From NCBI RefSeq assembly GCF_001194135.2, contig NC_068982.1, positions 95,839,464 to 95,903,463 of the forward strand: a DNA stretch of 64,000 nt, written 5' to 3'. This document shows positions 8,404-62,056 of this stretch, one piece after another. Within the stretch, counting starts at the first letter, position 1. Each line of letters opens with the position of its first letter. The position numbers and the translations under genes are program-made. Origin of the DNA: Octopus bimaculoides (Eukaryota). The notes below the pieces were generated by a model. The model had not been told where the DNA came from. It made no database searches and saw nothing but the letters and a program-made list of their open reading frames with translations.

Positions 8404-8789
8404 GCAAGAGAGTTAGGGGTCGAGGATTCAACCCACTAAGGGATAGTATCTATCCAATATACTGCTGGGAGGGTACCCCATTATTGTTACACTAGTGTTA
8501 TACCAAGTGTAATAAGTGAGTGCGGGTCAAGGGGGTTATTTTACCCTAAATTTATATAGCAATATATATACACACACACACAAATGAGTGTGTGTGTACG
8601 AGCGCGCTTATGTTCATGTGTAAGGGGTGATGTATGTTAGCCTGTGTATATTATATGCGCTGGTAAGTGAATATCAATTATAATAATAATCCTTTCTACT
8701 AAAGGCACAAGGCCTGAAATTTGGGGGAGGGGTAAGTTGATTGCATCGACTCCAGTACTCAACTGGCACTTATTTCATCGATCCCGAAA

Positions 8790-9075
8790 CTCGCGGACGG
8801 AGGATCGCGGTTTCGATTCCCAGACCGGGCGTTGTGTGTGTTTATTGAGCGAAAACACCTAAAGCTCCACGAGGCTCTGGCAGGGGGTGGTGGTGACCCC
8901 TGTTGTACTCTTTCGCCCCAACTTTCTCTCACTCTTACTTTCTGTTTCTTGGGTTAAAGCTGCGATGGACTGGCATCCCGCCCAGCTGGGAAGGGAGAAC
9001 ACATACGCCATAGAAACCGGGAAACCGAGCCCATGAGCCTGGCTAGGCTTTAACAAAGGGTGCATAAATAAATAA
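8790..9075 (+). mobile_element. SINE with family-A 5' half and a different 3' half
   Basis: Matches family A to ...CTCTTACTTTCTGTTTC, then continues CTGCGATGGACTGGCATCCC...CATAGAAACCGGG...GGTGCATAAATAAATAA. Confidence 0.7.
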
Positions 9076-17878: not shown

Positions 17879-18134
17879 TTATTAAAGTATATTAAAGGTA
17901 AATTTCTGTATTAACACCAGCACGATTTTCACTAAGAAAAAAAAACTCGGATTTTTACGTGCAATCAAGTACCCTGACCTAATATGCTGTAAATCNNNNN
18001 NNNNNTCGGCCCCAGGCTATAGTAGAAGACATTTGCCCAAGGTACCACGAAGTGGAACTGAATACGGAACCATGTGGTTGAGAAGCAAGCTTCTTACCAC
18101 ACAGTCACGCCTGTGCCTTATTAAAGTATATTAA

Positions 18135-19978: not shown

Positions 19979-20938
19979 TCACAGTGGACAATATTCTCGA
20001 ATAATGTTACCTCCAGAATTTGAAACAGGTCTCAAATAACCGCTGTTGCCAGAAAGCCATTCTATATATTCTGCTTGTGTTGAGTCAAATGGTGAGGAGA
20101 GAGTTTCTGTCAGTACTTGGTCAGTGGTGTCATTGGCTCCATTGAAAATTCCGGTCCAACAGAACGGGTACATAGAGAGTAATTGAATATCCTGCTCATT
20201 TTCAAACTCGTTCTTAATGTAAGAGGAGAGGATATCTCTCAGTTGTAGTTTTTTCATGAAACGCTGTCTACCTGACTCCATTTCTGATTGCTCGAACTTG
20301 CCATGCTTTGAGTCTAATTTCGAAACAGCTTCATTGTTAATCTTTGACCGTCTATTTCGAGTTTCTCGTTGCTTTTCACAATGTCCCACATTAGCTAGTT
20401 TTTCTTCTTCTAGACTGTTATTGTTTTTATTCAGTGCCGCATGGAAATCAGGGGGTAATTCCTCGGAATAATCAAATTCATCAGGGTCCCTCTTTAGTTT
20501 CAGAGATCTTCGGCTAACACGTTGACCGAAGCCACATTTATAAAAAGGTATGGTTTTCCGCCTGGTCTTTATATTTGCTAATAAATCCTGCCGGCCTCTT
20601 CGAAAGTAAGGGTGGCTGAATGAAAAAACACCTCTAGAAGACACATGCCAGCCAAAACTATATTCGCGGAAAAGACGCCTCAGGTTAGTAAACTGTGGAA
20701 TTTGAACAAAGCCTGGATATAAGTCCATTACTAAAGCTTCATAGTTTTTAGGTCCAGGATTTTCTTCAATTAAGGAATTTGAAGCATTTTGTTGTGTAGG
20801 AAAGCCTAGTGATATTCTTACGCCATTACTGTCCCACCGAAGAATACGGCCGTCCTCAACTACTGCATAAAGTTTCTCTGGAAATTTGTCACCACGCTGA
20901 AGATAAAGGCGGACCTTTTGCTTTCTTTCTGGATTCAT
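19979..20938 (-). CDS. Intronless HSF-type DNA-binding-domain protein (divergent, HSF5/HSFY-like architecture), 319 aa
   Basis: Uninterrupted ORF; first ATG at 20938 (the ORF track starts 9 codons earlier at a TTG). N-terminal motifs FPEKLYAVVED..ILRWDSNG, FTNLRRLFREYSF and FSHPYFRRGRQDLLANIKTRRK line up with HSF DBD helix 1/W-G, helix 3 (canonical SFVRQLNMYGF) and the C-terminal F.HP.F.RG...LL..IKR. Confidence 0.85.
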   Translation of the reverse strand: MNPERKQKVRLYLQRGDKFPEKLYAVVEDGRILRWDSNGVRISLGFPTQQNASNSLIEENPGPKNYEALVMDLYPGFVQIPQFTNLRRLFREYSFGWHVSSRGVFSFSHPYFRRGRQDLLANIKTRRKTIPFYKCGFGQRVSRRSLKLKRDPDEFDYSEELPPDFHAALNKNNNSLEEEKLANVGHCEKQRETRNRRSKINNEAVSKLDSKHGKFEQSEMESGRQRFMKKLQLRDILSSYIKNEFENEQDIQLLSMYPFCWTGIFNGANDTTDQVLTETLSSPFDSTQAEYIEWLSGNSGYLRPVSNSGGNIIREYCPL

Positions 20939-21320: not shown

Positions 21321-23877
21321 AAGAATACGCACACCTGGTGTTTATGGTTAGGCTGAAAAAGGGTGGTATGCGTAGTCTTTACCCCCGCCGCAAAGAGAAT
21401 GTGATCAAGTCTAGACCAGTGAACAGTGCAAGTTAAATTAAACTTTCATGCTAGACATTCTTATATCTATATTTACGGAGACATTCATCGGCTATTTCCT
21501 AGCCTCTTAAATCTGGTCAAAAGAACTTTTAAAATGGGCCATCTAACGAAAAATCGATTTCTCAAATGTTTGAACAAAATGGAAAATGGAATGTTGTTGT
21601 GCCCATGCCTCTACTAATGACCTCAGTATGTTGAAACAACAAAACGTAAAAATTGACTACCCTCTTTTATTCTATGAGGCTCGATAATTCAAAATATATA
21701 GAGAATCCTGAAAATTTTGTGTAAGGTGAAATCACTTTAATTCCACAAATATTTTAAAGCTTTTGGTAGTAAATTTACACTAGAATATTCGTTGCCAACA
21801 GCATTTCTTCCATAAAATTGTTTCTTTTTTTCAAGAGCGTTTGTAAATGAAAAAAAATTGTCTTGCTTATATATAAATTGCACTACATGTGAGTGTCATC
21901 ACAGCATGTCAGAGTGTGCAGTGCGGTCCTTGGTTAGGAAGAGATATACATTGTGTATCAAGAGACATTGTAAAAACAATATATATATTGTTTATGCGTC
22001 CACTTGTCTCCGTTTTCTTGCGATAGAACCTTCGGTGCTTTTAGCATATCGAAAATTAATATCAAGACAAAACAGTACATCAAGCTACCTGTCGAAAATT
22101 TGGACCGTTCGCCTGACGTGACTGACGTTGCATTTATCTATAGCAAAATAAGTCAACTCTTACAGGCCCAGTACACCTAGAAGTCCTAATTTAACAGACC
22201 CATGATCAAAGGCATTCCAACCGTAACTATCGTCTTACTCCTAGACATATTGTGCCCAGAAACACCTAATATAAGATGTCCTTTTTACCTAGGAAACTAG
22301 AGGGAAATTTGAGATAAATTTGGCTGCTTTTTTTTTTTTTTTTTTGTAGATCGAACTTGTAGACGCTACCATTCATCTATCTCCGATGTAGATATTTAGA
22401 TACATTCCCTCACTAATACTAAGTGCAAAAGAACAGCTACCGTCGAGCTCAGCTGAGTCCACCACCAGAAACTACATTCCTTTAGAAATCAACTGGACAG
22501 TGGAGAGAGTGTATCTCCGGACTGTCACATTGCAGTGCAGTCCTTGGTTAGGAAGAGACATTGTATATCAGGAACAACAAATGTGAACTGTAAAAACCAC
22601 ATGATCAGTGAAATATCTAATTTGGCATAATATTCACACCTTTACATCTCTTTTATTGCTGTGTAATGCTCAGTAATTAATTCCAACAGTAACTTGAAAA
22701 CTTATTCCCCTAAATGTCTGGCTATGTGCCAATGTTAGAAACTATATAAAAGGACATAAAAACAGAATCTTCTATATTGTAATAAATTCAAATTAATTAT
22801 ACTTACATTTCACTAGCCTAGAAAAATTTAAACTATACTCTGAAAGACACTACCTTTGTCGTACCAACTATTGATGTTTATGTAATTGGAAGCTGAAAGG
22901 TAATTTAACATTAGAACATTAATCTAAGGATTTTGGTTAAACTGCATCTAATAATTTTTTCATGATCACTAATTGCTACAGTTATCTCTATTTTAGGTGG
23001 TGGTAGCAAGGGTCATGTTAATAGCAATCATGATAATGGTAGCAGTGTTTGGAATCATTGTAGTGGTGATGATAGTTGGCAAGATCAGAATAATATCAGT
23101 AATTAGAATGACAGTGAGTTGCTGTGATCAGTACATTACTGCAAGTGTGGCACAGAGATTAGATCAGGCATAGGCAACTTTTTATGCAAAGTGGGCTACA
23201 TGAGACATGTCTTACCTGCAGGTGAGTTACACTACTAAAAATTCAAGATAATTTTTCATTAGGGACACTATTCAGAAAGTCCCATAGATTGTCCATGACT
23301 GTGTTAGCTATTGTCAACCAGTTTTGATACAGAAAATATCTTACATAGTATTTTGTTTTAGCAATGTCAGTGTACCATACAGCTGGATTAACTAAGATCA
23401 CTTTTGGTTCAGCTGGACTTTCAGTGCACGTGGTCAATTCTGATACAGCAAGTTTCTCAAAGATTTGCTGAAACAACAGTCTACTAGATTGAGTGTTGGA
23501 GTATCAGCGTGAAATCCAATGCGGGATTTTTGTTACTGCTATGAAGCCCTAATGATCTCTGATCAAGCAAAAGTATGATCAAAAGCATTCCAGCCATGAC
23601 TATCTCATCTTGTTTCTATTCTACATCCAGGTCTATATTCCATTTTTTAAAAGAAAAGTCTGTATTATCTGTTGTGTCCCTTTTTACCATTTCAGTAAGG
23701 TGACTTGATAATAATTTGGCTGCTATTTGTAGAACGTTGACAGGCCTTATAGATGCAGCTTGGCTACCATGAATAAGTAGTGCACAAGTGTCTATTCAAA
23801 AGAATATTTTTTTGTTAAAACTTGTGCTTAGTCCAGAAGAAGCCAATTCAGTTCACTGTCTGTTTATAAAAAAATTA

Positions 23878-24262: not shown

Positions 24263-25419
24263 ATAAAAAAAATTACCTTTTACCTTCCATTTGGCTTGTT
24301 ACTACCATCATTTTTAACATCCACTTTTCCATACTTGCTTGCATCAGATGAAGTTTGAGATAGATCTATTATAGCTGATTGCATTTCCTGTCACCAACCA
24401 CCATTTGTTTCCAAACAAGGTAATATTTCCCAATGGTCACATGTTTCCACAATATCGGAAATAAATGATACTGCTTGTGTGACAGTAACACAAGGAGAAA
24501 CAAGCATACATGTACACACACAATGAGATTCTTTCAGTTTCCATTTACCAAATCCACTCACAAGGCTTTGGTCTGCCCAGTGCTATAGAAGACAATTCCC
24601 TAGGTGCTATGCTGTGGTACTGAACCCAAGACTATGTGGTTGGGAAACAAACTTCTTAACCACATAGCCATCCCTATATCTACAAATTCATTTTAATTAA
24701 CCTATTAATGATCTTAAAAAAATAACAAAACATTGTTATTCTTTTAGTGTGTGGAGGAGATGTAAAACTTCCAGTCAGAAAAATCTGCAACCAGTTTCAA
24801 ATCTTTATGGGATCCAAAAACAGGTCTCAGAAAAAATAGATTTTTAGTTTTTGCCATAAATATTTTAACCAGAAGCTATATTACAAATCTAAAAAATTAG
24901 ATTAAACCAATGTGCTTTTTTTTTTTTTTAAAGAACAGAGAGTAGCTCAAAAGATTTGGCTATTTTTACCTCTGGGAAATCAGTGCCTTAAGAAATAGCA
25001 AAACAGACTGGATAGAGGAGAAAATGCAACAGGCCCATACAATAAAGAGCCTCTACATAAACAATTGACATGCTAGAAATAGCAGCTGAATCATCCTTAA
25101 ATCATAATTTCTTTAATAAAAATGTAAGTACACATTGAACAATGTAGCTGTAGATATGCAAAAGACAGGATAGTCACAATGGTAATACCCTTTAAATTTT
25201 AGGTTCATTTAACTGGACTTCACTTGGAACAACTATTGTAGGAACAGTGTGTCGTTTTCAAATTGACAGAGGTAAAATATAGCTAGAGAACTGGCTCTAC
25301 AGATCTCATTGAGTTGCTCAGCCAACTACCTTTGTGCTATAGTTCTCAAATAGAATATGTTACATCTACATGGCATCATATCATCTTGAAATAAATTGAT
25401 ATTTATCTCAACACCCTGT

Positions 25420-26800
25420 GTCTATGCTATGTGTCTTGTGTTTTTGTTTTTGCAATTTTGTGTTTATGCTTTTTTGTGACTGTATATCTGAGTGTTTGTG
25501 TATCTGTGAGTGTCTGTTTGTGTGACTGTAAATCTGCAGGTTTCGTTAGTACGTCTGTCCTTTTCGGTTTCTGTAATTCTTGTTTTTCTAGCGTCTGTTT
25601 GTTTATATTTCTGTGTCTCTGCCTATCTTCCTGTTTATGTGTGTGGGTCTGAATTTTTGTGTGCTTAGAAGTCTGTATGTTTGTCTAGCATTGTCCCGTC
25701 TGTGTCATTTTTAACTGGAGATCCTATTGGTGTACTCTTTTTACTTAACATTGCTGGTTGGTCTGTTTCTTTTGTTCCATCATCGTTGACGACCTCTTCC
25801 TCTCTTTTTCTCGATTTTACCTCCACGAAATCTTGTTCCATCAGCTGTTCCTCCTCATTCCTTTTCTTGATTTTCAGTTTCTGCTATTTCATTCACTATC
25901 CTCGGGCACTTCCTTTTTAAGTGCCTCCCTTTCGCCGCACTCATAACACTTAGGTCTTCCCCCACCAACATTATCTCCAGCTTATCCCCATTGGGAAGCT
26001 CCAAAGTCTCTAGCATCTTTTTATACCGATCCTGGCACATCACGTACTCCTACCAATTCATTAGTTGGGTTCGGTTCATCAATATTATCCTTAATTTTTC
26101 ATTGTTCTTATCTTTATCATCCGAAAAAATTCCTGTGATAATCCATTCAGGATCAATGCGTGTTGGAATCCTGCCCAGCCTAACTGTATATACACTCATC
26201 CGTCAAAATTGGGCATCAATATCCATTTGTCGCCGAACTTTACCTCAGAGGCGTATTTTTCTGCATCTTCCTCTTGCACAAAAGTAATCTCCACTGATGC
26301 GTATGCTTTACTTCTCGTATAGAAAGAGGTTTTGTCTTTAAAATAATCCTCTATTACTTCATCTATTTCTTCTTGTAGCGCATTTTGAGTTTTCTACTCT
26401 TGTTCGAAAAAGTTCTGTATGTTATTGTTCCGTTCTCCATTTTCAATTTTTCTCCCCCTGGTAGGGTCAACCTAATATTCGACCCCTCTCTCCTCGCCAG
26501 GTTTTTGTATTTCTTGTACAGCTCTTCCTTACCACGCCACAATTCCTGCTTCAGCACCCTCGCGCCGATAGAAGGTCGGCTCTTCGTTGCCACAGCATAA
26601 CTCTTCATATCACCGAAAATTCACCACCACCAAACACTGATGGCTTTACACAAAAAATTGCTGCAAGCAGTACCAAAAACAACACCAACCGTTTACACAA
26701 AAACTTTTAGCAAAAATAAATGACACGCACCTCAAAAAAAGGAGACAAACATAATTAAAATCCTATTTCTTTTTTGCCCACAAGGGAACAATACAAAAAT
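25420..26800 (-). mobile_element. LINE ORF1-like unit 2 (divergent paralogue of unit 1), frameshifted, no ORF2
   Basis: Fragments VEITFVQEEDAEKYASEVKFGDKWILMP, VYTVRLGRIPTRIDPEWIITGIF and GRPKCYECGER/HLKRKCP (about 25900-25965); ends in an ACAC/AGAC-rich tract. Confidence 0.6.
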
Positions 26801-26829
26801 ATGTGGTGACACACAGCACGAAAAAATAC

Positions 26830-28310
26830 AATAAAATATAATATGAAAATGATAATGAAAATGTGTTGCTTGCCTCACGTCAAGCCGCATCACTTACTTC
26901 CATTTTATCTTTTAAATCTTGAGTCTTTCCGTATATCTATACCGTATTCTTCCTTTAGCTCCTTGTATGTCACATTGTCCTGTATTTTATCAATATCCAC
27001 GCTTATCCTCCGACATTCCTGTCCTTTCTTAAATTTAGCTATTTCTTCCTTTTTGTTTTTCTGACATCAGTATATACAGGTGCCATCCTACGTTCGTGCA
27101 CTCCTATAATTCTACAAACTTTACATTTTTCCACGTTGTTATTTTTGTTAAGTAGTTCCTCATCTATATCCTCCGTAATTATACAAGCACAACATATCTC
27201 ACCGCGAGGGGTATTTTGTACATTGTTGTGACTGTTTTTCTTTCTCTGTGTATCTGTGTAGGAGGGGAATGGAGGTTTGGTGTCTGCGGAGGGTATGGGT
27301 GGGATGGGTGTTGGTTGGGTTTCCTGTTCATCTTCACTTTTTTCCCTTTTTCTCTGCTTCACCACCTTCCATAATTCTTCCTTCTCTGGTCCCTTCCGTT
27401 CTTCCGGCTTTCTTTTTCTCAGGGCAGTCTGCTCTGTTGTAGCCCTTTTGGCAACATTTGTAGCAGCGAGGGATTCTACGTTTCACAGTCAACACGACTT
27501 CACCTATGGTTATGGTCTACCATTTTTTCCAGATATTTCGTAGCGCACTGAATTATGATTTCGAGAGCCTTACCTTGCCAGTTCGTGGCCTCTGTATTTG
27601 TGGCCTGGATGATTGTCACTTCCTCTTTGCTTCCCAGAAACACTGCTGCCGCCACCCAAGCCACGTTTATTTCCGAGGGAATTCCTTCCACCTTGACTCT
27701 GGCAGCCCTTCTTCCCAAGTACATTGGAAGGAGGACAACTTTGTCCGTCTTCAGAGGTGTTACTGAGTGTTCCCTTGCTTTCTCGATGCTTTTGAAATGA
27801 ACGTTCACTGTTCCGAAACGGCATCCTCTGGCAAGGTAAGTTATATATCGCCAAATTGGCCTGTACTCTCTCGATTACTTCTGTTGACTCTAAAGTGAGC
27901 TTTTCTTCCACTGAGTACACCTAGTAGACAATGATCTCTCCATTTTCCCATTATTTCCTCGAGTGGTGACAATTTAACATCACCACCATCTCTATCCACC
28001 ATGTTTTCGAACCTTCTCAAATTCTTCACATTTACCTCCTTTTTACGAATTTCTGTGGCTTCCGCGAAGGTCTTTCCTTCCAAACGCCTATCCATTTTCT
28101 TCCCCGCTCTCACGAGCTCCTCCTCTAATGACAACAATTCGCTGATATCCGAATAAACAGAGTTAGTTGAGTAATACCCTGCCACCTCTCACGGAGAGAA
28201 AGCACAACTGAACCGCTGCTAAGCAGCAAAAACAGTAAAAACTTTCAAGCAAACAAAATCAACACTATGCAGCACAAAAAAGAGAAGGAAAAAAAAAAAG
28301 GCGACCCGAC
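26830..28310 (-). mobile_element. LINE ORF1-like unit 1 (RRM-like region + CCHC-type knuckle), frameshifted, no ORF2
   Basis: Fragments VHFKSIEKAREHS...LLPMYLGRRAARVKVEGIPSEINVAWV and RCYKCCQKGYNRADCP (about 27422-27468); T-rich 5' leader. Confidence 0.65.
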
Positions 28311-28605
28311 AAACATAATTGCATAGTAATTTCGTTGCTTCTTTTCCTCTTTCTTTAGGGAGGTTACACTTTAAAACTTGTTGGGTGTTGATATGCAAAT
28401 TTTATTTCCTAGTCACAATATTTAAATGAGAAAGAAGTTGCATTATTTTTCTTTTTTTTTATATCCAGAGTGCTTATAACTTTTAATGATTTCTTCTCTG
28501 AAGATTCAGTGTGTGAACTGCACCTAAAAATAGTAAATTTTTACTTTTCATCCATTTTAAATTACTGAACATTTGGAAAGAGAACAAAACTAAAATTAAT
28601 TCACA

Positions 28606-28702
28606 ATGAATGACCTTCAAAATTTTTACAAAGATTTCTCTTGTGAATACTCTTTTATTTTACCACCAATATCACCAAGTTTAGATATGCCTTCCATATC
28701 AG
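28606..28702 (+). CDS. MARF1: MARF1 candidate first coding exon ([32 protein letters not shown]), ending at a GC donor
   Basis: ATG at 28606 in ACAATGA context, in-frame TAA at 28597, 32 open codons, then CAG|GCAAGT (GC-AG donor consensus) in phase 1, matching the phase-1 acceptor at 29317. Confidence 0.55.
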
Positions 28703-31086
28703 GCAAGTATCTTTATAATACATTATTGCTAAGGAGATAAATTTGTTTTAAGAAAATAATAACCTGCATTGTTTTTATGTTCTATGTTGAAGATAATTTT
28801 AATTATATCATTGATATAAGTCTTTTGAATTTTTTTTTTCTCAAAATACTTTTAAACAAGGTTGTTTTTTATCTGGAATGAATTTTTTTTTAATTTTGTT
28901 AGATACTGTAGGTACTGAAGTTTGTCATTTTTCTTTTTTTTTTACCATTACTAAAATTAAAGTAAATATCTGTGTATTATTTTAAATATATATGTTTCAT
29001 GTTATGAAGTTTTGTTTAATGTTCTTCATATATTAATTTAAAATAAAGTAGATCATTCTTCAATTAATTTCTGAAAATAGAATTCAATTCCGAATTAATT
29101 GAAATCAATTATTTACTAGAAATTTTGCTTATTTTATCCTACTTTTCCTATCAATAAAGTTATAAGATTACATGGTTATCTTTTTAAATTATACTTCAAT
29201 CTAAATTTATTCAAAGTGAATAATTTACTCTGATACTGTTTCATTTATAGCATCAAATTTTCATAAAGAATTACAATTATCTACGTCTTCAGTTTTTCTT
29301 TTTTTTTTTTCTACAGACTCTAAAATATCTGGATCGAACTCGAATAGCAATTTTGATGATGGAACTTTTTACCATAACCCAGATAGCAATTTGCCAGAGT
29401 CCTCACACAAAAATCACATCAATGCTGTTAAAGAAAGTGTCAAGTCTTCCTATAAAACCAATATAGACAAAGATAATTTTTCTAATATTTTTAAACAAAA
29501 TAGCATTCAAAAAGAACTAATTGAAGAAGTCAGTAGTCCTAGTTTACAACCTGGATTACTAGAAAATCCAAGATCCAATACATGTGATCCTTTAAACAAT
29601 TTTAGGAATCAATCTGAAAAATATTCTGCCACCCATAGCTTGTACACCCATCAAAACCCACTTAAAAATTCATTTCATCCTGTGAAAGCAAGAACACCAA
29701 ATTCCCAAATACCAAACACCAATCCAGTCTTATGGTCAGACTCTGAAAAATGTACTGTATTAGATTCTGTGGAAGTACTTGTTAGTAATCTTGACTATAA
29801 CATTAGTCCAAGAGAGTGGAAAGAAATTCTCTCTTCAACTTTTCGAGCTGCAGTTATGGTAAGATTTTCAGAAGTTATTATACTTAGTTCTTTATAGCAA
29901 CATAGATGGGGTGGATGGATGGTTATGTTCATATGTATATTCAACCACGGTAGTGGTTGAATATATTCTTAAGTTCACCATTTCGTCAATTGCAGCAGCT
30001 TCCAAGCTTCACCACTAATTCATTTCGCAACTAAATTACAAACTATCAATAGTTTTAAAGAGGACACCTCCTCAGCTACACTTTGGCATAAATAGTTTGA
30101 GATTTGGTTCTGTAGAAAAAAAGTTACATCAAAATATCTGCGACCTCAAGGGGGGGGGCAGTAAAGAAGATATTCATCTTAAATTAACATAAATTTTTTA
30201 ATTTTAAATTAAAAGTATACTTTTCTTAGGCTTAAATGAAAGGAAAATGCATGAAAAATTCAGAAACATTAGTCNNNNNNNNNNNNNNNNNNNNNNNNNN
30301 NNNNNNNNNNNNNNNNNNNNNNNNNNNNNNNNNNNNNNNNNNNNNNNNNNNNNNNNNNNNNNNNNNNNNNNNNNNNNNNNNNNNNNNNNNNNNNNNNNNN
30401 NNNNNNNNNNNNNNNNNNNNNNNNNNNNNNNNNNNNNNNNNNNNNNNNNNNNNNNNNNNNNNNNNNNNNNNNNNNNNNNNNNNNNNNNNNNNNNNNNNNN
30501 NNNNNNNNNNNNNNNNNNNNNNNNNNNNNNNNNNNNNNNNNNNNNNNNNNNNNNNNNNNNNNNNNNNNNNNNNNNNNNNNNNNNNNNNNNNNNNNNNNNN
30601 NNNNNNNNNNNNNNNNNNNNNNNNNNNNNNNNNNNNNNNNNNNNNNNNNNNNNNNNNNNNNNNNNNNNNNNNNNNNNNNNNNNNNNNNNNNNNNNNNNNN
30701 NNNNNNNNNNNNNNNNNNNNNNNNNNNNNNNNNNNNNNNNNNNNNNNNNNNNNNNNNNNNNNNNNNNNNNNNNNNNNNNNNNNNNNNNNNTATATATACA
30801 TTTTACACATGTAAAAAAAAACCTCATCACGCAATCGAACTGATGAAAGAGCCTCGACCTGGTCGTTCGACATGCTAAAAATAGCAACCTAAATCACATG
30901 CCCATTGGATGTAATGTCCTACGTTATCCCTAAAAAGACGGTTTGCTGAAGGCTGGAATGTCATTGATGATAGGTTTACAGTAAAGAATAAGTTTCGTAT
31001 TCTTTACTAGAAGTAATAGCTTGTCCTATACTTTTACAGGTTTATAATCTTAAGAATATTACTTTTTATGCTTGCATTTTTCCATG

Positions 31087-31127
<41 letters not shown>

Positions 31128-34100
31128 TATATATGTATATGTATTATTGTGTCTGAGGAGAGCCAAATATAAAAACGAACATATATATATATACACACAC
31201 ACACAGATGTAGTTGTCTTATAGTAATAAGACAAACATAGAAGTATTAGGATGTATATTTAGGGTGTCATACAAATTCCCATACACTATCATCATTCCCA
31301 TTTTACATTCATTTTTCATACTATTATGTGTTGGACAGGTCATTGCTCTCTTAAACGGATTGGAGAACAATGACTTGCATGTAAATTTCATTTTTGCCTT
31401 GGTTTCTGCAGCTGGATGTGCTTTCTAATGCTAACCACTTTACAGTGCACAATATGCATTTTATTGCAACACCAGCATTAGACAGAATGGAAATAGGAGA
31501 GTGGTGGATAGCAAAAGATGAATAAATTAGTGAATGATGGCTATTGATACTACAATGCCAGTGGAAGACAATATGGGTCAAGTATATGGTACACATGCTG
31601 ATCTGAGGAGTTCCTATATGCATATACATCAAGATAGGTATAAGTTAGTGATAAAGTTAAAAGTATTTATTTCACATTTACAGTGCTATTTATAAAATAT
31701 CTTTGTTTCAGATATTTAGTGATTTGATTTGAGATTTTAATCCTGAGACTAAAATAATTACATTGTTGTAATAATTTTAGCCATTAAGTTTTGTTATACA
31801 TTGTCTGGAGAAACTGGTGACTGATGTGGTCCTTGAAATACATAGGCAGGGAAGAAATTCCTGAGTATTCATATTCTAGATAGGAACAATTGGTGATAGT
31901 GCTTGGTGGGGAACAGGAGTATGCAAGAGTCAGGTAATCCTAGATGTGGGTAAATAAAAACTGGCCAGCTCAAAGAATAGAAGCCACTATAATAGCAGTG
32001 AAGACAGTGAGGAGATTTCACATTTGTGAACTAAAAGTTGAAAATTCTATGCTAATTAATTAGATGGCATTTTGTATGTGGTTTATGTATGTATTAGCAA
32101 CAGCACTGTCTTGGATTGGGAGAAGTATTACAATGTATGTTAGCAACTGTTGGAAAGATAGAGAATTCTATCCTTGAAGATGAAGGCTAGTCTTTGAGAT
32201 ATAGGTTTGCTATGTTGTAAATGTGACATAGTTAATGTATTGATACTTACTGTCAATGGCTAAATCATAGATCTGATGAAAGACTTTTACATCCATTTTT
32301 TTTTCCTATGATTTCATGAAACTGCTGTAATGGCTACATAATGCAAATAATAGAAAAATTATAAGGTAACATATTTTTAAAATACTGCTTTTCATTTTCT
32401 TGTCAATATTCAGTACATTATTTCTGTCAAGTCATTCTCATAGCATTTTTGCCATTGGGGCACTTCAGTTTTGTTTTTAACAATATTCCTTTCAGTTTTT
32501 GACTTTCAATTGAGATGAGTGGAAAGTAATACAATTGTTATAAAAATTTTCTACAAGAATCATAAAAGTGACATATCTTTAAAAATGTTCAGTATAGAAT
32601 TAAATATTGATATAACTTTCATTCACTTGCTTCATGGGTTTGGTAATCTATCTCTTCCCCCAAGGTGTGGTGCCATAATGAAGCTCATCTGCCTTTGATA
32701 AGTTTGGTTTTATTATTCTGCTGGATGTTCACACACTCTTTGAGAAAATTCTTTTGGGAACTGTTTATTCACCATCCACTTAACTATGAACAGTTAGTAT
32801 TGCTATTGGTAGCAAGTTTTCATCAGCCTGTAATAGAATTGGTCCTGACCTGACAACTATTTCTGTATTATTGCTGTATAAAATTGCTACTTAATTCACT
32901 TAAGTAGGCTCAGTAATCAAAAATCTAATTGATAGAATATTTATCTTAGCATGGTTTGACCAAACAATTACCAAGTCCTGTTTCTTAACTAGTTGCAAAA
33001 AGAAAATAAAATCCATACCATGTTCCCTTTTTTATGCTGGCATAGGTTGCACAGGAGTTTTTGAGGCATTTTTTTTTTTTTTTAAGCTAGATGCCCATCC
33101 TGAGGTCTACTCTTGGTGGTCTAACACTGGGATTCAGTTTGCTTATTGGGTTTCTCATGGATAAATATTACATTAGATATACTGACTGTAACTTTATGAA
33201 GCTGAGAAAAAATAATGTAACTATCATGTAGTCATCTACAGTTCCTTGAATTCAGTTTTGTCTAAAGCTCTCTTGAAATAATTGTATGATGTATACAGTT
33301 TGGTGAGCAAAAAGCTTAGGCTCCAAATCATAGCTTCCAGTAAAATCAATTTTATTTTATGCAAGTTTTTTTTTTTTTTTTTTTTACCAACGTGGTATTT
33401 TCAGAAGGTTATTCAGCCACTAAAAACAAATTATTGAAAGGCCACATTGTAATAAAATTTTGACATAATACTGAAGTGACCAACAACCAGTGTGTTGTCA
33501 AAATGACCCACCCAAAGTATAACATTATCTAATCTTTTTTCTCTGCTTTAGTTTCATTGTATTTTGTTTATCAGGTTATTGATGTAACAGTCAAAGCACA
33601 ATCTGATAATTCAAACTTGGCCATTGTGCGGGTACCAACAACTGATGATGCCAGATTTGCCATATCTCAATTTCATGGAAAGAAAATTGGTTATAAAAGA
33701 GTACATGTGTGTTTAAAGTCTGAAGGAAATTTGAATCAGTCTAGCATAAGGTATGTTTTCTCTTTTTCATTGTCAGAAAGAGTCCTACAGATTTAAACTA
33801 ATTTATAAACTTCCTTATTAAATTAACCTCAAATGTTTTGTTTATATTTTTTAGACAAGTAGCTTATCGAGGGAATAAGAAATTATGTAACACGATCTTG
33901 TTTGACCCCAGGTGAGGCCTAAAGAAACAGACCTATGATCAAAAGCATTCCAGCCATGACTATCTCATCTTAAGAATTTCATATCTGGGAATACATTGTG
34001 TGTCGTCAGGTTCAGAGGTGTAGTATAAGGAAGATTCGCCTATTTCTTGTAGGTCAAGTGACTAGACAGTGGCCCTGTTACTGGCTAGTTTATAATATTA

Positions 34101-37100: not shown

Positions 37101-40100
37101 AAGTTAAATGGAGTGTGATGCAATGATGTTTTTTTATGAGTAACATTTGGCATCCCTTTATTAGAGGATGCTTTTGAGGTCTCTGTTCAAGGAGCTGGTG
37201 TAGTTTTGGCATATAGTTTTGAGATTGTAATGGATGATGTGTAGTTAGAGAATGTTGGGAGAAATAAAGGATAGTGTCATCTACATTAGAGTAGGTGTTG
37301 TTGGATGTGACAGCAAGTTAGTCATTGATGAATAGAAGGAAGAGGGTGGAGATAAATCTGAACCCTATAAAATGCCTTTATAAGCGGAATGATGAACAGA
37401 ATGAGCTCCATCAAAACATGCAACACTGCAATTCGACAGGAAGCTTTCAATCCAAGAAATGAGACATGTGGTGACCATAGGTTATCAGTTTTCTTATTCA
37501 CATGCCTGGCACAGACAAAACTTTTGCTGACATGAAGGGCAACCACATTGCTTTCACCAAATTTGTTCAAGAGCCAACTGATGAGTGATTGAGTAAGCCA
37601 CTAGTGAATCTGACTTTACAGAAATTGTATTGGTGGTCATTAAGAGGAAGATTAAAGTCGTTGGAGAGGCATTAATGACTCTACATTACCTAAGATTTTA
37701 GAAGTGAGTGCAAAATTCCAATAGACAGCAGTGAGGGTGCTGTTTTTGAAAATGGGACACACTGTAGCATGTTTCTAAAGAAAGGGATAGATCCTTGTAG
37801 AGAGTAAGATTAAAGAGCCTGGTGAATAGAGGGGCAAGTTCTGGAGCACAGTGCTTGAGATTTACTAGAAAAGACATTGTTAGGACTATAAATTAGATTC
37901 AGGCTATAAATTAGATTTAGAAAAGAGGAAAAGATCACTGGTGTTTTGACTGTCTGGGTATCAATCTGGGACACATGTAGTGGGTAAGACAAATTGATGC
38001 TGGCAAGAGGTTCAGATTCTGCACAGATGGCATCAATGTGGAGTAAATGAGAGAATCACAAGGAGTTGTGAATGTTAAAGCCACTAAGAACAACTTTAGA
38101 GGGAAATGAAGAAAGATGTCTTCAGTGCAAGAGGAGGTAGGGTCAAGGATTTTGGTGGTTTGAAGAATTAGAAGAGTAATAAAAGATGCAGCTGTATTTG
38201 GGGGAGTGAAGGAGGGAGAATTGAATCCTGATAACTTGTTTTTATTGCTTGCATTTATAGTTGTTGTCTCAAAGAGGACTAGGTTTTATGGTCTGAGTAG
38301 GATTGAGAGTGGAATGATTTTAGACACTGGAGAGAAAATTGTCTGGAGGTTTTACTTCTGGATTTATGTATTTTGAGTAAGAGGGTGGCGGTGCATTGAA
38401 AGAAAGGTCATGACAACTCCTGGACCAAATGCTTGGAATATAGCAAACTCTACTTAAGGCACCCAACGACCAACTTGGACATGGCTCCTTCTCCACTACA
38501 AAAAATGTCTTTAACAAAGGTATTTTTTTGCAAGACTGAAGAATGTTTTCTGATATTCATTAAAGTAAATAATCTAGTGTATGACAATGAATTTTTGAGA
38601 AAAATAACTTACCATGATTGACAATTCAATGTAATTGTGTACATCAGTAATAAAAATACTTTATGAAGATATATAAATTTGTTCCAAGCAGATCAGAAGC
38701 AATAGCCATACTAAAAGAAGCAAAAGGACATGTTTTGCCACTGTTTAAGTTCATTGAACACTTTGACAGAAGGTAAGATACATATTTTAATCTAACATCT
38801 ATTTTTGTTAATGTGAAATTTATTATCAGTTGTGATGCCCTTACTCTGAATGAGTTTGCTGAATAAACGTTACTGTCTTCTGCTGTGGTGGTAAATAGAG
38901 AAGCTGTATGACACTCTAGTGGTGAGTGAGGATGTGTCTGTCTCTCTGTCTCTCTCTCTCTCTCTGGTAGAGGCAGCAGAGTGAAGGGTGTGTGTGTGCA
39001 ATGAGGAGTGGAAGTGAAGCTGCATGCCTCTCTCTCCTTTTGGCATTGGGTAAAGCCATGTATGTATCATTGTTGCAGGGGAGGAAATAAAGGTTGTGCA
39101 ATGCTATTGCATTTCTTCCTTTTTTTAATTTTTCTCTTGTGCTTTGTATACAATGATCCCTACTGTGATCCAACAATTTGTTCATTTCCAACATTCAAGA
39201 CCTATTCCCAGCCCTACATTTTCAGTAGTTCAGCATTTTACCAAGAAAATATAAGAAACAGCTTTCTGTATTTATCTTGTGTAAGAGAATGCTTGTGTTG
39301 AGATGTGTGGGTTATCTTTCAAGTCTGATAGGATTACAAATAGAGCTTATCCATTATCTTGATTGTAATTAAACTGAATACACAAATAACAATGTCTGCA
39401 ATATTTAATGTGAGCAATGTAATTATCACAACTTCCAGGATGTAACATGTAATTAGTAAGAGATGCATAATTAGTGTGTATGATTATTTCAACTTGAGAT
39501 TGAAATGCTTAATATTATAGCACAGATGATATAATTTAGTGTCTAGAGTTTGTTCACAAAATTTCAGTTAACTTTATTTGCCATTCTTCTGGAATTGAAA
39601 TATGTATCAGTATCAGCTATGATTTAATCTCTTAGATATAGACCCTTGTTACTAGACAGTATCATAGACCAACTTCCAGCAAACAGTTCATAACTTAATT
39701 CAATTTCCTAATTAAAGATATTTCAATTAACATTTGCTAACCCTTACAAGGCCATCAATGTCATTTCCACAAGTTGTAAATCATTGTGTATCAAAATATT
39801 AACTACTAGTGCTTCCTTCTAAGATAGGTGTAAAGCCATAAATTTGAGGAAGTATTGTAATGTTCTTGCTTGGCTGGCTGATGTAAAATTGGATACACTG
39901 AAAAGCTATAATCTCAACACAGTATACAATTATGCTAACCACAATGCCACACTGTTGACCGGAAGCAGACTAGGTTCTAATTCGATCATTTCTAATGACT
40001 CCTGTGTAACAAACTATTTTTGCAACAAACTCTCATCAAGTCCACCTTGCATATTGCACTGACAACCACCAGGGTTTTGTACAAGAAACTGGGAAGCAAA

Positions 40101-43699: not shown

Positions 43700-46600
43700 C
43701 GACGGGCTTCTTTCAGTTTCCGTCTACCAAATCCACTCACAAGGTTTTGGTCGGCCTGAGGCTATAGTAGAAGACACTTGCCCAAGGTGCCACGCAGTGA
43801 GTCTGAACCCAGAACCATATGGTTGGTAACCAAGCTACTTACCACACAGCCACTCCTGTGCCTATATTGTTGTGGCAAAACAGATTGTAATTTAATTTGA
43901 ATGAAAGAATGTGAAATTAGAAGTCCTTCAGTATTTTAGATAGAAACTATTTCCTAATATTGATTAGGAGATGCTATAGGCTACTCTTTCATTTCTTTAA
44001 ATTTTCGCACACTCCCTCTGAATTTTAGTTGTGCTAATATTCATTTTGTTGTTACATTAAATTTTCAATTTCATTTTCTCTAAACTATAACAGAAAATAA
44101 TAGGCTATGAGAATACTTTCTCCCTCTTTATTTCTCTCTCCCACCTGTGTTAATTTTAAACAATTATTAATTCAATGTAGGTGGAGAACATTCCCTAGAA
44201 AAAGAATCTTTAGTTAATTGTTGTTGTTGTTGGCACTCCGTCGCTTACGACGACGAGGGTTCCAGTTGATCCAATCAACGGAACAGCCTGCTCGTGAAAT
44301 TAACGTGCAAGTGGCTGAGCACTCCACAGACATGTGTACCCTTAACGTAGTTCTTGGGGATATTCAGCGTGACACAGTGTGACAAGGCTGACCCTTTGAA
44401 TTACAGGCACAACAGAAACAGGAAAAAAGAGTGAGAGAAAGTTGTGGTGAAAGAGTGCAGCAGGTTTCACCACCATCCCCTGCTGGAGCCACATGGAGCT
44501 TTAGGTGTTTTCGCTGAAACACTCACAACGCCCGGGCTGGGAATCGAAACTGCAATCCTATGACCCCGAGTTCACTGCCCTAACCATTGGGCCATTGCGC
44601 CTCCACTTTAGTTAATAACAAATACCAAATCTGGAGAATGCTTACTCTAAATGCATTACAGCACACTTGTTTCCAAGTTCAAATCCTATAATTGCCTTTT
44701 TTTCTTTATCTCTTTAGGTTTGAAATATTACAACTGATTTCAGCCCTAATGTGAAACTAAATTATAATTGAAATTATATGTAAACAATTTCTTTTTCAGT
44801 TGTTAACAAATATGTGAAAATTTAAGAAAATATTGTATTCAAACGTTATAGTTGTAATAGTTATAGTAGTTTCTTATTGTTACATAATTTTGGATAAAAT
44901 TTTTTTTTTAATTGCATAAAACAGCCATTTTAAAATGGAAATCCTTTATTTTTGAGCAAATATGGTCACTTTTAGTGCTGGAAATTAATATCCAAATCAA
45001 TATCAGAATCACTTATCTAAAAGCCTCTTTTACAAGTATTATAACTGTTTATAATGATTCACTTGATTCTTCTTGCCCCCCCCCCCCCTTAAAAAAAAAA
45101 ACAATACTCACTAAAAATTCGACTGCAACTTTTTGGAATTCCTTCTTTGCCCATATTTTCTCAACAGGTGTCAGCGTTTTAGTAAAGTTGATAGGCATTG
45201 CACTCCTTTTTTTAACATAGTGTACAAATAACATAGAAATATCCCTCTGAAAGTCTGAAATAAACTAGTTATAATTGTGAATATCTGAAATAATTTCATT
45301 TTACTCTTTTGCCAATCACACAACTGCTTTAACATGAAATATAACCTTTCTCATTTTAATTGAATTCTACATTGTTTTACAGGCATCACCGTTCTATCAC
45401 TGTATCAGAATTGTATAAAATGAAAGGCATTCTTGAGATTAGAGAGCAAGGTGGAGCTGGAAGAATGGTTCATTTAACAGCATCATTTATTGCTTCTCAA
45501 AAAGAGGATACCAAGGTAAAGTTAACATTTACCTCTTTTAACTTAATTGTTCCTTACACTTAGATTATTATCTCTAGCATTTTTTTTCATTCCCAACTGT
45601 CATCTCATTCAATTTGCTAGTATGCTTTGTAGAAGTCATGAATATTACTATAATCATTTCCTTCTTTTTCTAAGGTCAATACTTCTAATTACTCATTGAT
45701 GGGTTATATCACATTAATGCATTATACAAATATTTATCAAAAAAGTTTCTTTCATTCACACTAAAACAGTTCTTAAATTCTAAATAGGTCTTCATTAACA
45801 TGCCTATGAATTTTCTGTAAACTTATTTTCCAGATACAAGACTCTCTAGAATCTTCTATCTGTCCGATCCATTGTATTGGAAGTATGACTGAAATAGTGC
45901 AAACGCTTTCAAGTAACTTTCTCCCAAATGTGAAAATCAGACGCACTGATCTGGCATCCCAGCTGAAAATTCTATTAGAGAAACATAGAGGCAGCATCCC
46001 ATTAATGAGGTATGGTTTTTTTTGTTTTGTCTTGATTTTGTTTTGTTTTCCAACCTTTCAGCATCAAAATAAACTTTTGTCAATCTTGTTAACCACCAAC
46101 ATAAAAGAACATGTTAACTGTTGTGGCATGTTACAACGTATTAATTTTCACCCTAGTTTCAAGAATTAAAAACAGAAGCTACAATATCATTGCATTGGTA
46201 AGAACTTCCACTTTGAATATTTATCTGCAAGTGGGAGCATTATCAAATGGCTAGATGCTTGGTTAAGCATGAGGCAGAAAGGAAGGGACTTGCCCATGAT
46301 TGCAAACTGAAGTTCAGAAGCATGAAATGTTTAGAATTACAAGACTGTTAGTGAGAAGGAAGATATCATGGGTGAAAAGTGTTTACAGAATGATGAATGC
46401 ATAAGTGCCATTGATATGGAAGACAAAGTGGTATGAAAGTGCATTTATAGCAGGTTGCTGAATGTGGAGAATTTTTTGGAAAAAGAGGGGCTTCTTTATG
46501 CTGATCCTATTCGGGTACCAGCAATTCAAGCTGACAGCAGCATGTTAGATAAAGCTATTAAAGACATGAAGAGAAAGTTAAGAGTAAACCACAATCTCTA

Positions 46601-49014: not shown

Positions 49015-49119
49015 NNNNNNNNNNNNNNNNNNNNNNNNNNNNNNNNNNNNNNNNNNNNNNNNNNNNNNNNNNNNNNNNNNNNNNNNNNNNNNNNNNNNNN
49101 NNNNNNNNNNNNNNNNNNN

Positions 49120-54900: not shown

Positions 54901-57900
54901 AAAAACATTCCAGTAGGTTGCCTATCATGATAAACATTCACAACATTGTTTATGAGTATAGTTAAAATTATGTACTTCTGGAAAGAATTTCTATACTGTT
55001 TGATTTGCTACTTTGCATGTCAGATCTTTGTATAAAGTAATTTTGAGTGAACAAAACAAATACAGTGGTTGTACAATGAATTGAATACTGCGAATTAAAA
55101 ACCAGAGTTCATAGTCAGCCATTTTATTTCCTTTAGGAAAGACTTGGGTATTACTTTTCTACCTTCACAGAATACAAAAGTCAAATATCAACCAAAGAGC
55201 AATCACCCTGTCAACATAACACTGAAAACAGTAGCCAAAATTTTAATTATATAGATGTAAATTTATCTTTAGATACAATGATGAAGATATAACTGATAGT
55301 TCTCCTGCTTTCATTCAATAAGCATGATATCCTAGTTCACCTTCAACGTACGCACAATATCCTGGCCCTCCCTCAGTGTACACACAATATCTTAAACATG
55401 ATCACTGCTGTAAAGGTGGACATGTACCTAGAGTTAGTCGTATAACAAAGTTATTTCGCCAGCTAGAGATAGCAGCCAAATCTCTCGTATGACACATGGA
55501 AAGGAGATAATGGATATTGTAGTTCTAGGTACACTATGCCTGAAAAAAAATCTTGGCTTGATTAACTTTGATAATAGTCTGCTCAGAGCTGGCCTAGGGT
55601 TAAAGAACAGTAACTCAGGTGGGAGAGAATGCCTGGACTATTGAAGGAACAATTGTGAGTCTAACAATTTAGCATTTATTGAATCAAATACAACCCTAAC
55701 TGAAATTCACTATTAAATAAAGCATAAGGAATGTATTTTTCACTTACTGCCTTGCTTGTTCATTACTTTATAATTAGTTTATTAGTTTATAACTTTAAAC
55801 TAATTATTTTATTAGCTTTCTGTTCTAACTCATGTTGGATGCATTTGTAATGAATCTTCTGATGAATCTCAGTATTAGATTTGACTTTTTAAATAATTTG
55901 TTGCTCCCCCTATTACTAATCACTACCATGGCGCAAGTTTGGTAAAATCGTTTTGGCAAAATACCAGTTTTCAAATTTAGGAATTCCTCTTGCCATGTCA
56001 ATTGAAATAAGAATTTGATCAGGTGGCTATATATAAACTAATCAGTATTTCTCATTAAATGGCATGAAATAATTGTTTTTCAACAGTTGGTTATGATTTG
56101 TAATATTTTAATTAATATTAAAGACTTTTATCTTTTACATTTCAAAGATTACAAATTTAACATTTTTTTTCTTTTTAGTTTCCCTGTTTGTTATTCTTTG
56201 GAAATCCACCCACTTGAGATTTTTAATAATGATGGTGTGAACTTGGAACATCTAATTAGTACAATCCCTGGTATCAAAATTTCAAGTGGAAAATTGGGAG
56301 TGAAGAAGATTCAGTATGCAGAAAGCAAGTCAAATCAATTTGTTTTATCAAGCCATAGTTCTAACACCAATGGTATATCAAGATCTTTGTTTTTCATCTC
56401 TCCATTATTTTCAGAATTTTAATTTTTCTACAGGATTTCAAAGCTCTATAGACTAAACATGTACCTAGAGTCATTCTTACAACAAAGTTATTTGACCAGC
56501 TAGAGATAGCAGCCAAATCTCACTCATATAACACATGGAAAGAAGATAATGGATATTGTAGTTCTAGGTACACTATGCCTGAAAAAAACCTTGGCTTGAT
56601 TAATTTTGATAATAGTCTGCTCAGAGCTGGCCTAGGGCTAAAAGAACAGTAACTCAGGTGGGAGAGAATGCCTGGACTATTGAAGGAACAATTGTGAGTT
56701 TAACAAGTTGGAGTTTATTGAATCAAATTGTCCTTCAATTAGGTATTTACCTAGTTATTTATGTTACCTTTCTCTCAAAGGTGTTCTATATAGTAAAGCT
56801 GAACTGAAAGTCCTCTGAGTCTCTAAATAGGATGATAGTCTGAATTAAGTTACATCATATGAGTACTGCAACTCACACCTCCATGTTAATGAAACCTTTG
56901 TCTCACATACAAACTGTTGTGAACTGCAACTTTTCAATGATTTAGCTAGGTGTACACTCAGCTTTGAGAAAAGTGTCTTGTCCAAAAATAGAACATCATC
57001 TACAATAAAATATAGACTGTCAACCAGTAGAGAAATGTTGGCTAATCTATAAGATGTAGTGTTTTAAATGCTTCATATTCCATTTCTTCATTTAACATCC
57101 ACTGTTCCATGCTTGCATGTGTCAGATAGAATTTGTTGAGGCAGATTTTCTATGACTGGATGCCTTTCCTGTCATTCACACATGCTTCTAAGCAAAGTAA
57201 TATTCTTTCTGTAGCCAAACACATTTTTCACAGAAGACAGGAAACTAACAATATTGCTTGTATAACAGTGATGCTCATTTACAACCACAGTTTCAAGACG
57301 AGGACAAACTAGTTTCTTTCAGTTTTTCTACCAAATCCATTCAGAAAACTTTGGTCAACCTAGGGCTGTAGTAGCAGGCTCTTGCTCAAGATCATATACT
57401 TGGGAGATAAGCTTCTTAGCCACAGAACCATACTTGTGACTATGAAGCAATATTTAGTTTTAGAACAACTTGTAGCTTGACTTTGATGAAATATAAATTC
57501 TAGTTTTTTTTTTTAGTGTTTGATTTTGAATTATCATTCCCTTCCGAAATCAGAAAATGTATATAAATTTAGACAGTGGAATATTTTTTCAAATTCCAAA
57601 TTATATATATATTGAAATTAGTTCTTCATTGTTTAACTCCCAAGCCAGTCCTGATTGGACAGACCTATTATCAAAACTATTTCTAGATACACCGACCTAA
57701 CTTTTTCAGATATTGAACTTTAGATGCATTGTTTTGTTTCATTGCTATGCTATATCTACTTTTTAGCCATCACTTTTTATGACTGGATGTTAACATATCT
57801 CTATACTTTTTGTGATAGGGAAGCTGGGAAAAGCCAAACCTACTTCAACCCTTGAATTAGGATTTTGTCAGCAATTGTGCTCCATCTTTTACTGTTGGTT

Positions 57901-60900: not shown

Positions 60901-62056
60901 GAGTTGCAGGAGATTCCGAAGTCGTCTGGAGGCCATGGTTGGTGCCAATGGCGATTTTATTGAATGAATATACTCCTTAGTATTTCAAGATGTTTTTATG
61001 TAATTTTGGTAAATATATTTGTTAAAATGAGATGTCTGTGTTGTTTTCATTTTTGCATAATTTAGACAGCAATTTACCACACCCAGTATGTGTGTGTGTG
61101 TGTGTGTGTGTGCATATTTGGAAGCTATATCTCTGTGAAGTTTATCAAATTAATTCCTGGCACTCAATGGTTTATGAAACAAAGGCCCAGTTCAATTAAA
61201 ACTTGGATGGAGGATGAAAGTTGAGAACAAGTGTTTAGACTGGCTGATGAAAGCTACATTGGGAAGAATTCCAGCAGTTAATCATTTCCTGTTGTTTAAT
61301 GTTATAAAGTGGACAGGAAAATAAGTAATATGCCATGAATTGTTTAATATTAAAATACTAAGTTCTGCTTATTGATTTTTTTTTTCTCTTTTTCACTGTT
61401 ATCATCATTAGAGAGAATTCTAGAAAAACCATGGAATGTAAAAGAATATGGTGTTTGTTACATTGAAGATCTCCTCTCAGACGTTCCACCTGCAACATTA
61501 TTGGTAAATCTCGGGTTTTTGTTTTATTTGCAGCCATTACAGCTAAGACAAGCACATTTTTTAGTCATTTTTCTTTTTCATTTTTAAACCATATATACTA
61601 CAGAGCAAAATTATATTTTTTTCTTTGCTTAAAATAATTTGAGATTAACACATACTTTAGAGAGGAATTATTATGCCTAATGTAAGCAAAAATCAAAATC
61701 TACTTTTGTTTTTAAATGCCAATGTTTTTTTCTATAGAGAATTTTAGATAGCTTTCTTAAACGATTCATAAGTTATGTAACTAACTAAAATTAACTTCTG
61801 TATCTTATCTCTCTGATTAATTGGCATTTCTTACCACAACCATCTTGAGTTTATACAATTTGAATATTTTAAGAGTCAGACTTCAAATAACCACATTTAC
61901 CACACTTTGTTAATTTACACACCAGTTATCTTATCCTTGAGAACTTTGAAAGTGATATCATTGTCCCTGACATTAGCAAACCTTATGACCATGCTTTGTG
62001 TAAGAACTTTCTAGCTAACCTAACCAGTTATCAATTTTACCTGTCTTGGTCTGAAA

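Follow-up and report, generated by a model that had tools for sequence, protein, structure and literature searches.

The octopus MARF1 gene probably encodes a protein without the NYN nuclease domain and the first RRM

Results

The MARF1 gene in the window

The DNA analysed here, referred to as the window, is a stretch of 64,000 nt from contig NC_068982.1 of Octopus bimaculoides. It is AT-rich, repeat-rich animal DNA with seven runs of N. Its + strand carries an orthologue of MARF1 (limkain-b1), which extends from 28606 to past the right edge of the window. A preliminary description of this DNA, made from the sequence alone, had proposed a MARF1 that appears to lack the NYN ribonuclease domain and the first RRM (RRM1), and this proposal is followed up here. 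The exons were delimited by hand and by script. The resulting model has ten exons with a coding sequence (CDS) of 1863 nt, corresponding to 621 codons without internal stops. All exon borders are AG...GT, with the donor of exon 1 as the sole exception. This donor reads CAG|GCAAGT in the window, and the equivalent site in Argonauta hians (about position 10104 of locus L003) has a canonical GT. The exons and the first two introns are as follows.

28606..28702, + strand: exon 1, candidate-start coding exon; ends with one additional base and has its GC donor at 28703-28704
28703..29316, + strand: intron 1, GC-AG
29317..29858, + strand: exon 2, linker rich in Ser, Asn and Pro (S/N/P-rich) and first half of the RRM
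29859..33574, + strand: intron 2, holds the assembly gap 30275-30790
33575..33750, + strand: exon 3, second half of the RRM
38689..38772, + strand: exon 4, start of LOTUS1; 84 nt, equal in size to the Pecten exon
45383..45515, + strand: exon 5, remainder of LOTUS1
45834..46009, + strand: exon 6, MARF1_LOTUS region
56179..56372, + strand: exon 7, continues directly from exon 6 by comparison with the Argonauta protein
58879..59108, + strand: exon 8, OST-HTH/LOTUS domain
59229..59367, + strand: exon 9, part of the MARF1 model
61412..61503, + strand: exon 10, last exon identified; the gene goes on past the window

The window portion represents the 5′ two-thirds of MARF1, and the Argonauta protein (GAB1598641.1, here P0003) runs more than 300 amino acids beyond exon 10. 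Exon 1 is homologous to the N-terminus of this protein (23 of 33 residues identical), while exon 2 is homologous to a large exon of the scallop Pecten maximus that codes for residues 246-639.

The assembly gap in the region of interest, at 30275-30790, falls within intron 2. Exon 2 ends (...RAAVM) and exon 3 starts (VIDVTVK...) in phase 0, and across this junction the RRM shows no insertion or deletion when compared to P0001 (an open reading frame (ORF) from a metatranscriptome), Argonauta P0003, Pecten and the structure PDB 2DGX. In addition, the Argonauta counterpart of intron 2 measures 827 nt and is free of exons. Judging from these alignments, no coding sequence is hidden in the gap. The order and strand of the exons also agree with the gap-free Argonauta locus. 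The other six runs of N are located as follows.

4947-5575, 6613-7038 and 17996-18005: N runs upstream of the gene, about 1 kb in total
48504-48513, 49015-49119 and 50704-51297: N runs in the intron between exons 6 and 7, which are contiguous by comparison with Argonauta

Domain content and octopod relatives

The predicted protein opens with a lineage-specific, S/N/P-rich N-terminus of about 183 residues, which begins with the conserved motif DFSCEYSF-x-LPP. The first recognisable domain is an RRM (Pfam RRM_1) at amino acids 186-256, with 20.9 bits against a cut-off of 20.7. Directly after it, from amino acid 274, follows MARF1_LOTUS (PF19687; 93.5 bits against a cut-off of 27), and the in-window part of the protein also contains OST-HTH (74.8 bits), while the remainder of the LOTUS array is encoded past the window. 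Only two solved structures matched the window protein, and they align to adjacent stretches: 2DGX, the RRM of KIAA0430 (MARF1), to amino acids 184-262, and 5YAD, a LOTUS domain of mouse MARF1, to amino acids 266-332. No Pfam match to NYN (PF01936) or RRM_MARF1 (PF11608) was obtained in the 621-aa window model. It had been proposed that the first domain of this MARF1 is the equivalent of the second RRM (RRM2) of vertebrates, and the domain order bears this out. The single RRM directly precedes LOTUS1, as the second RRM does in the Pecten protein, which agrees with the predicted equivalence to vertebrate RRM2.

Among 1.84 billion representatives searched, the top named matches were the MARF1-like proteins of Argonauta, Pecten, Dreissena, Bulinus and Elysia. 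The protein combines an RRM followed by a MARF1-type LOTUS domain with OST-HTH/LOTUS repeats, and its closest relatives are annotated as MARF1, as expected for a member of this family. In the stretches examined, neither a NYN domain with its four catalytic Asp residues nor an RRM1 beside it, as in the canonical vertebrate-type protein, was found. The layout in these stretches is that of the Drosophila type, with an RRM and a LOTUS array and without NYN.

The best match in the same search was GAB1598641.1 of Argonauta hians (930 aa, 59% identity). It shares the initial Met of the window model and aligns, residue 1 to residue 1, with the first 402 amino acids of this model, that is, through exon 6. 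It contains RRM_1, MARF1_LOTUS and OST-HTH (149.5 bits over three stretches), and no NYN. Its label 'partial' refers to the 3′ end, where the model halts at a donor-like site without a stop codon. Identity between the window and Argonauta proteins is distributed unevenly:

amino acids 1-33: 70%
amino acids 34-183: 29%
RRM: 82%
LOTUS part: 75%

The longest MARF1 product on record for Octopus vulgaris has 1075 aa, and its Pfam record holds MARF1_LOTUS and OST-HTH only. Records of this type can show NYN where the domain is present, as both NYN and RRM_MARF1 are listed for Pecten. The comparison of MARF1 domains that had been proposed earlier gives two further octopod annotations, those of A. hians and O. 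vulgaris, which are both without NYN. When the octopod N-terminus was used in a blastp search, matches were found only in cephalopod sequences.

Search for NYN and RRM1

We searched for the missing domains in the DNA itself. A tblastn search of the whole 64-kb window with the N-terminal regions of the Pecten and Bulinus proteins (NYN-RRM1 and linker) gave a best E value of 2.3. A profile of NYN-RRM1 was built from 85 homologues and run (hmmsearch --max) against every six-frame ORF of at least 12 aa. On both strands of the whole window the best E value was 8.5, and no NYN or RRM1 was found. The one genuine, weak match in the window was that of the RRM2 exon to the RRM1 part of the profile (E 11). 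In control loci the profile performed well, with E values of 2e-21 and 5e-13 for locus L001 and of 3e-43, 9e-32 and 1e-12 for the bryozoan locus L007. RRM1 was detected in these controls at 5e-13 and 1e-12, and even a 20-residue exon with the tail of RRM1 alone reached 0.02-0.06. The preliminary description had found no NYN motifs or RRM1 in 1-29316; the searches confirm this against strong positive controls and extend it to the entire window. Moreover, + strand ORFs of at least 24 aa between about 17.4 and 28.6 kb matched no Pfam family (a few low-complexity ORFs near 25.2-25.9 kb were omitted).

To the left of MARF1 lies an intronless gene with a HSF-like DNA-binding domain, which is described below. 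NYN and RRM1 were not found in the 20 kb of the window left of this gene. They were also not found in the gap-free O. vulgaris sequence equivalent to 15.3-26.0 kb of the window or in the rest of the fetched O. vulgaris locus. The same holds for 10 kb beyond the HSF-like gene of Argonauta and for the Argonauta MARF1 locus over its full 45 kb. L004, probably a third cephalopod, was searched over 10 kb on either side of the exon 2 homologue and yielded neither NYN nor RRM1; a homologue of exon 1 was not found there within 10 kb either.

The spacing of the exons in Pecten gives an estimate of where the missing exons should lie. In Pecten, NYN and RRM1 are located 10.7-15.9 kb upstream of the homologous linker exon, and the exons common to both genes are spread about 1.5 times more widely in octopus. 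The distance expected for the octopus is therefore about 16-25 kb, compared to 29 kb shown in the window, so that NYN and RRM1 exons would be expected inside it.

Protein databases were searched as well. A word-indexed search with Pecten NYN-RRM1 returned 36 matches, among them short stand-alone models of insect, tick and Elysia origin. The 36 included no protein of O. vulgaris or A. hians, though both proteomes were covered; this type of search misses long proteins and also short, near-identical octopod fragments that an exhaustive search recovered. With the N-terminus and RRM of the window protein as query, it returned two fragments only (P0001 and P0002). No NYN-bearing match extended into the octopod N-terminal region. 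We also looked for a cephalopod NYN among the unnamed matches and rejected the candidates: P0194 comes from a bryozoan metagenome, the others look vertebrate by motif, and identity to molluscan NYN domains did not separate the taxa. A literature search for cephalopod MARF1 gave nothing relevant.

The 5′ end of the gene

The features relevant to the position of the first coding exon are listed here.

28606-28608, + strand: ATG, candidate start codon
28591-28593 and 28597-28599, + strand: in-frame TAA stops, 15 and 9 nt upstream of this ATG
28632..28633, + strand: AG, candidate internal acceptor; if used, 28634-28702 is a 69-nt exon of phase 1-1
23108..23221, + strand: candidate distal 5′ exon with ATG 23108, ATG 23200 and a strong donor (CAG|GTGAGT) after 23221
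28390..28513, + strand: conserved non-coding islands from a finer alignment with Argonauta, namely the octamer ATGCAAAT at 28393-28400, TTTAAAT at 28421-28427 and CTCTGAAGATTCAG|T at 28496-28509

The candidate ATG at 28606 and its in-frame stop 9 nt upstream (the TAA at 28597-28599) are as stated in the preliminary description. Between 28504 and 28605 the frame of this ATG contains six stops in total, so that an upstream coding exon cannot read through this segment. The pyrimidine tract of the AG at 28632-28633 is weak, but by a count from the sequences it is comparable to that of the real exon 4 acceptor.

The CDS annotated for O. vulgaris MARF1 starts elsewhere, at an ATG that aligns to 23108 of the window. 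This position is 2.2 kb from the start of the HSF-like gene and 5.5 kb upstream of ATG 28606. The donor after 23221 is common to both Octopus sequences. From ATG 23200 to the G at 23221 the window would encode MRHVLPA with one base left over; this corresponds to phase 1 and suits the phase-1 acceptors 28634 or 29317. When 23221 is joined to 28634, the same Asp codon is rebuilt. Because of the O. vulgaris CDS start and this phase-1 donor, the likely upstream partner of 28634 is a short start exon inside the window. The distal exon is not conserved in Argonauta, where the best local alignment scored below shuffled controls. In addition, the window has a deletion of 70 nt at about 23160 relative to O. 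vulgaris (L011), which alters the frame relation of ATGs 23108 and 23200. Translation would start either at ATG 28606 or in the distal exon (about 23108-23221), which would then be joined to 28634 in phase 1. With either start, no NYN or other domain is added.

In the segment from the HSF-like gene to exon 2, conservation in Argonauta is confined to two blocks, 28581-28719, the region of exon 1, and a short one at 29058-29110 in intron 1. The islands upstream of the ATG, together with the conserved TTCACAATGAATGAC (28600-28614), could represent a proximal promoter with 5′ untranslated region. They could also be the end of an intron, with 28503|28504 as its acceptor and a branch point that serves 28634. 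Since the same blocks could sit in an intron ahead of that acceptor, the octamer, which occurs about once per 10 kb, and the TTTAAAT box are only possible evidence for a promoter.

The HSF-like neighbour and repeats

19979..20938, − strand: intronless HSF_DNA-bind-like gene of 319 aa (Pfam PF00447, 29.1 bits, weak but above the threshold)
25400..28188, − strand: transposon remnant with gag/ORF1-like ORFs and a CCHC knuckle, recognised by eye; no Pfam match

The HSF-like protein is 97% identical to its O. vulgaris counterpart and 74% to that of Argonauta, with more distant relatives in gastropods. It is arranged head-to-head with MARF1 in the window, in O. vulgaris and in Argonauta. The annotated MARF1 CDS starts of both O. 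vulgaris and Argonauta lie between the HSF-like gene and the RRM exon; in Argonauta, the start (the ATG of MND...) is 5.7 kb from the HSF-like gene. This arrangement suggests that the HSF-like gene marks the limit of the MARF1 5′ region, and that the 5′ end of MARF1 would fall within the 7.7 kb that separate this gene from the ATG exon. The two genes may share a bidirectional promoter region of about 2.2 kb, provided that the 23.1-kb exon is real.

The remnant at 25400-28188, probably a decayed retroelement, takes up much of the interval that separates the distal exon from the ATG exon. Its left end (25416-26044) is also present in O. vulgaris, and the intergenic region of Argonauta contains nothing equivalent. 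Another retrotransposon remnant is found left of the HSF-like gene, where a 390-aa ORF on the + strand (13903-15072) matches RVT_1 and DUF7047. Overlapping frame-shifted ORFs on the + strand (60287-60984), located in the MARF1 intron that separates exons 9 and 10, resemble a mariner/Tc1 transposase by eye (...WQQDSAPCH...); two ORFs from this segment gave no Pfam match at E <=0.01. Finally, a repeat family in which the same peptides recur is present on both strands, for example at 2420-3035, 8670-9030, 44280-44470, 52560-53020, 54490-54650 and 58100-58540. It is probably a SINE-like element (short interspersed nuclear element).

Discussion

Loss of NYN and RRM1 and its alternatives

Our data make it likely that the product of the MARF1 locus in octopods has a single RRM and is devoid of NYN and RRM1, as the result of a secondary loss. 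The absence is regarded as secondary because bivalves and gastropods keep the NYN-RRM1 module. Without NYN, octopod MARF1 would be unable to cut RNA itself. Its RRM and LOTUS domains would then most likely make it an RNA-binding adaptor, and the bound mRNAs would be handed to other decay or repression machinery, in analogy with Drosophila MARF1, which is said to act through the CCR4-NOT deadenylase. A broader proposal is that octopods, possibly all coleoids, lost NYN and RRM1 from the whole genome, with the N-terminus replaced by the new DFSCEYSF-x-LPP exon, which could dock an effector. To this broader proposal we assign about an even chance.

Several observations speak against a loss. Cephalopod introns can be very long, and our view upstream is limited to the window and, in the other genomes, to 10 kb beyond the HSF-like gene. 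In Dreissena polymorpha, a NYN-bearing isoform X1 exists next to the NYN-less isoforms X2 and X3, which use a short internal first exon, and thus a NYN-less start exon does not prove that NYN was lost. The O. vulgaris and Argonauta models start at different ATGs, which means that at least one annotated start is wrong or that both are alternatives. Moreover, the conserved block around ATG 28606 may function as a branch point and not as the context of a start codon, and the AG at 28632-28633 is conserved in Argonauta. Annotations can also split genes, as in Elysia, where one contig carries NYN-RRM1 and RRM2-LOTUS as two models. Lastly, the word-indexed search missed the 1829-aa parent of the Pecten query itself, so that the lack of octopod NYN matches in it is weak evidence.

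Some of these observations fit an arrangement in which the ATG exon or the 23.1-kb exon is an alternative first exon, and a longer isoform brings in NYN and RRM1 from more than 28.6 kb upstream by splicing in phase 1 into 28634 or 29317. The HSF-like gene would then be nested in a MARF1 intron. The Dreissena isoforms show that such an arrangement exists, both 28634 and 29317 are phase-1 acceptors, the AG before the former is the one conserved in Argonauta, and the sampled bivalves and gastropods carry NYN. The preliminary description had itself allowed for 28634-28702 as an internal exon joined to NYN exons left of the window. The conserved AG upholds the acceptor in this caveat, but its likely partner is a short in-window exon and not NYN exons to the left. 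We nevertheless consider a long isoform unlikely. For O. vulgaris, where only the longest product of the gene is recorded, this product is without NYN, and its CDS begins in the interval that separates the HSF-like gene from MARF1; the same applies to Argonauta. The searches for NYN and RRM1 were also negative over the 20 kb of the window to the left of the HSF-like gene and over 10 kb on its far side in both other genomes. In addition, the intron that would be needed is about three times the largest one seen in the gene (about 10 kb), and the Pecten spacing predicts the exons to lie within the window.

It had also been suggested that the gene underwent fission, so that a MARF1-type NYN-RRM1 is kept as a separate gene elsewhere and this locus retains RRM2-LOTUS only. 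Nothing found here supports this suggestion, and we regard it as very unlikely. Elysia marginata has a 270-aa NYN-RRM1 model and a 1526-aa RRM2-LOTUS model on one contig, which may be a real split or an artefact. On the other hand, none of the 36 matches to Pecten NYN-RRM1 was from O. vulgaris or A. hians, a result that counts only against a short stand-alone model. That the exons are hidden in N runs or were lost by a misjoin of the assembly seems hardly credible. Of the seven N runs in the window, three are upstream of the gene, but NYN and RRM1 of Pecten need at least four exons over more than 5 kb compared to about 1 kb of gaps. The HSF-like gene and the interval to MARF1 have the same layout, likewise free of NYN, in the gap-free O. 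vulgaris and Argonauta sequences, and the gap inside the MARF1 region itself (30275-30790) is intronic.

Comparison with known MARF1 proteins

The closest full-length relatives outside the cephalopods are those of Pecten, Bulinus truncatus (KAH9513099.1) and Dreissena polymorpha (isoform X1), with 46-48% identity from the linker onward. The closest of them, Pecten XP_033736360.1, is 48% identical from its residue 558 onward. It carries NYN at 9-146 and RRM1 at 184-245, neither of which has a counterpart in the window model, and RRM2 at 607-678. The exon structure around RRM2 and LOTUS1, including the 84-nt exon, is common to Pecten and octopus. Bulinus has NYN and RRM1 and Dreissena X1 has NYN, whereas the octopod loci show nothing comparable. 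Dreissena X2 and X3 resemble the octopod proteins in being NYN-less and start from an alternative first exon that is very short (MFHFVFRR...). In contrast to the octopods, which have no NYN isoform on record, they coexist with a NYN isoform and retain the tail of RRM1. MARF1 domain counts taken from the annotations of Dreissena (P0006, P0153 and P0154) and Elysia (P0010 and P0166) need care. The NYN-RRM1 profile also finds nothing in the homologues of the trematodes Clonorchis, Opisthorchis and Paragonimus and of the annelid Dimorphilus gyrociliatus, as in octopus; these are gene models with 36-40% identity and are much more divergent.

In mice, MARF1 is needed for oocyte meiosis and for retrotransposon control; it acts as a nuclease in mammals and without nuclease activity in Drosophila. 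If a clean loss of NYN in octopods holds true, it would be a further natural experiment on which functions of MARF1 need the nuclease, in a lineage with a very transposon-rich genome. It would also be another independent shift of MARF1 from nuclease to adaptor, beside Diptera and perhaps flukes. The annotation of molluscan MARF1, whose models are often split or truncated, would be refined as well.

Human MARF1 has a NYN endonuclease domain at residues 352-500 (Asp358, Asp426, Asp427 and Asp452) and two RRMs, and cleaves its targets itself (PMC6294520). The vertebrate protein shares with octopus an orthologous RRM2 and LOTUS1, with the RRM directly followed by the LOTUS array, but it has NYN and RRM1, neither of which was found for octopus. 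Drosophila MARF1 has multiple LOTUS domains and no NYN (PMC6294520), and it is described as an OST- and RRM-containing protein (PMC7122799). The MARF1-like protein of Drosophila melanogaster therefore has the same NYN-less architecture of RRM and LOTUS domains as the octopus protein. Drosophila belongs to a separate lineage and its protein has an unrelated N-terminal region; because the lineages are separate, a loss in octopods would be independent. As a MARF1 without NYN is already known in Drosophila, the octopod case adds a member to this type and does not represent a new kind of system.

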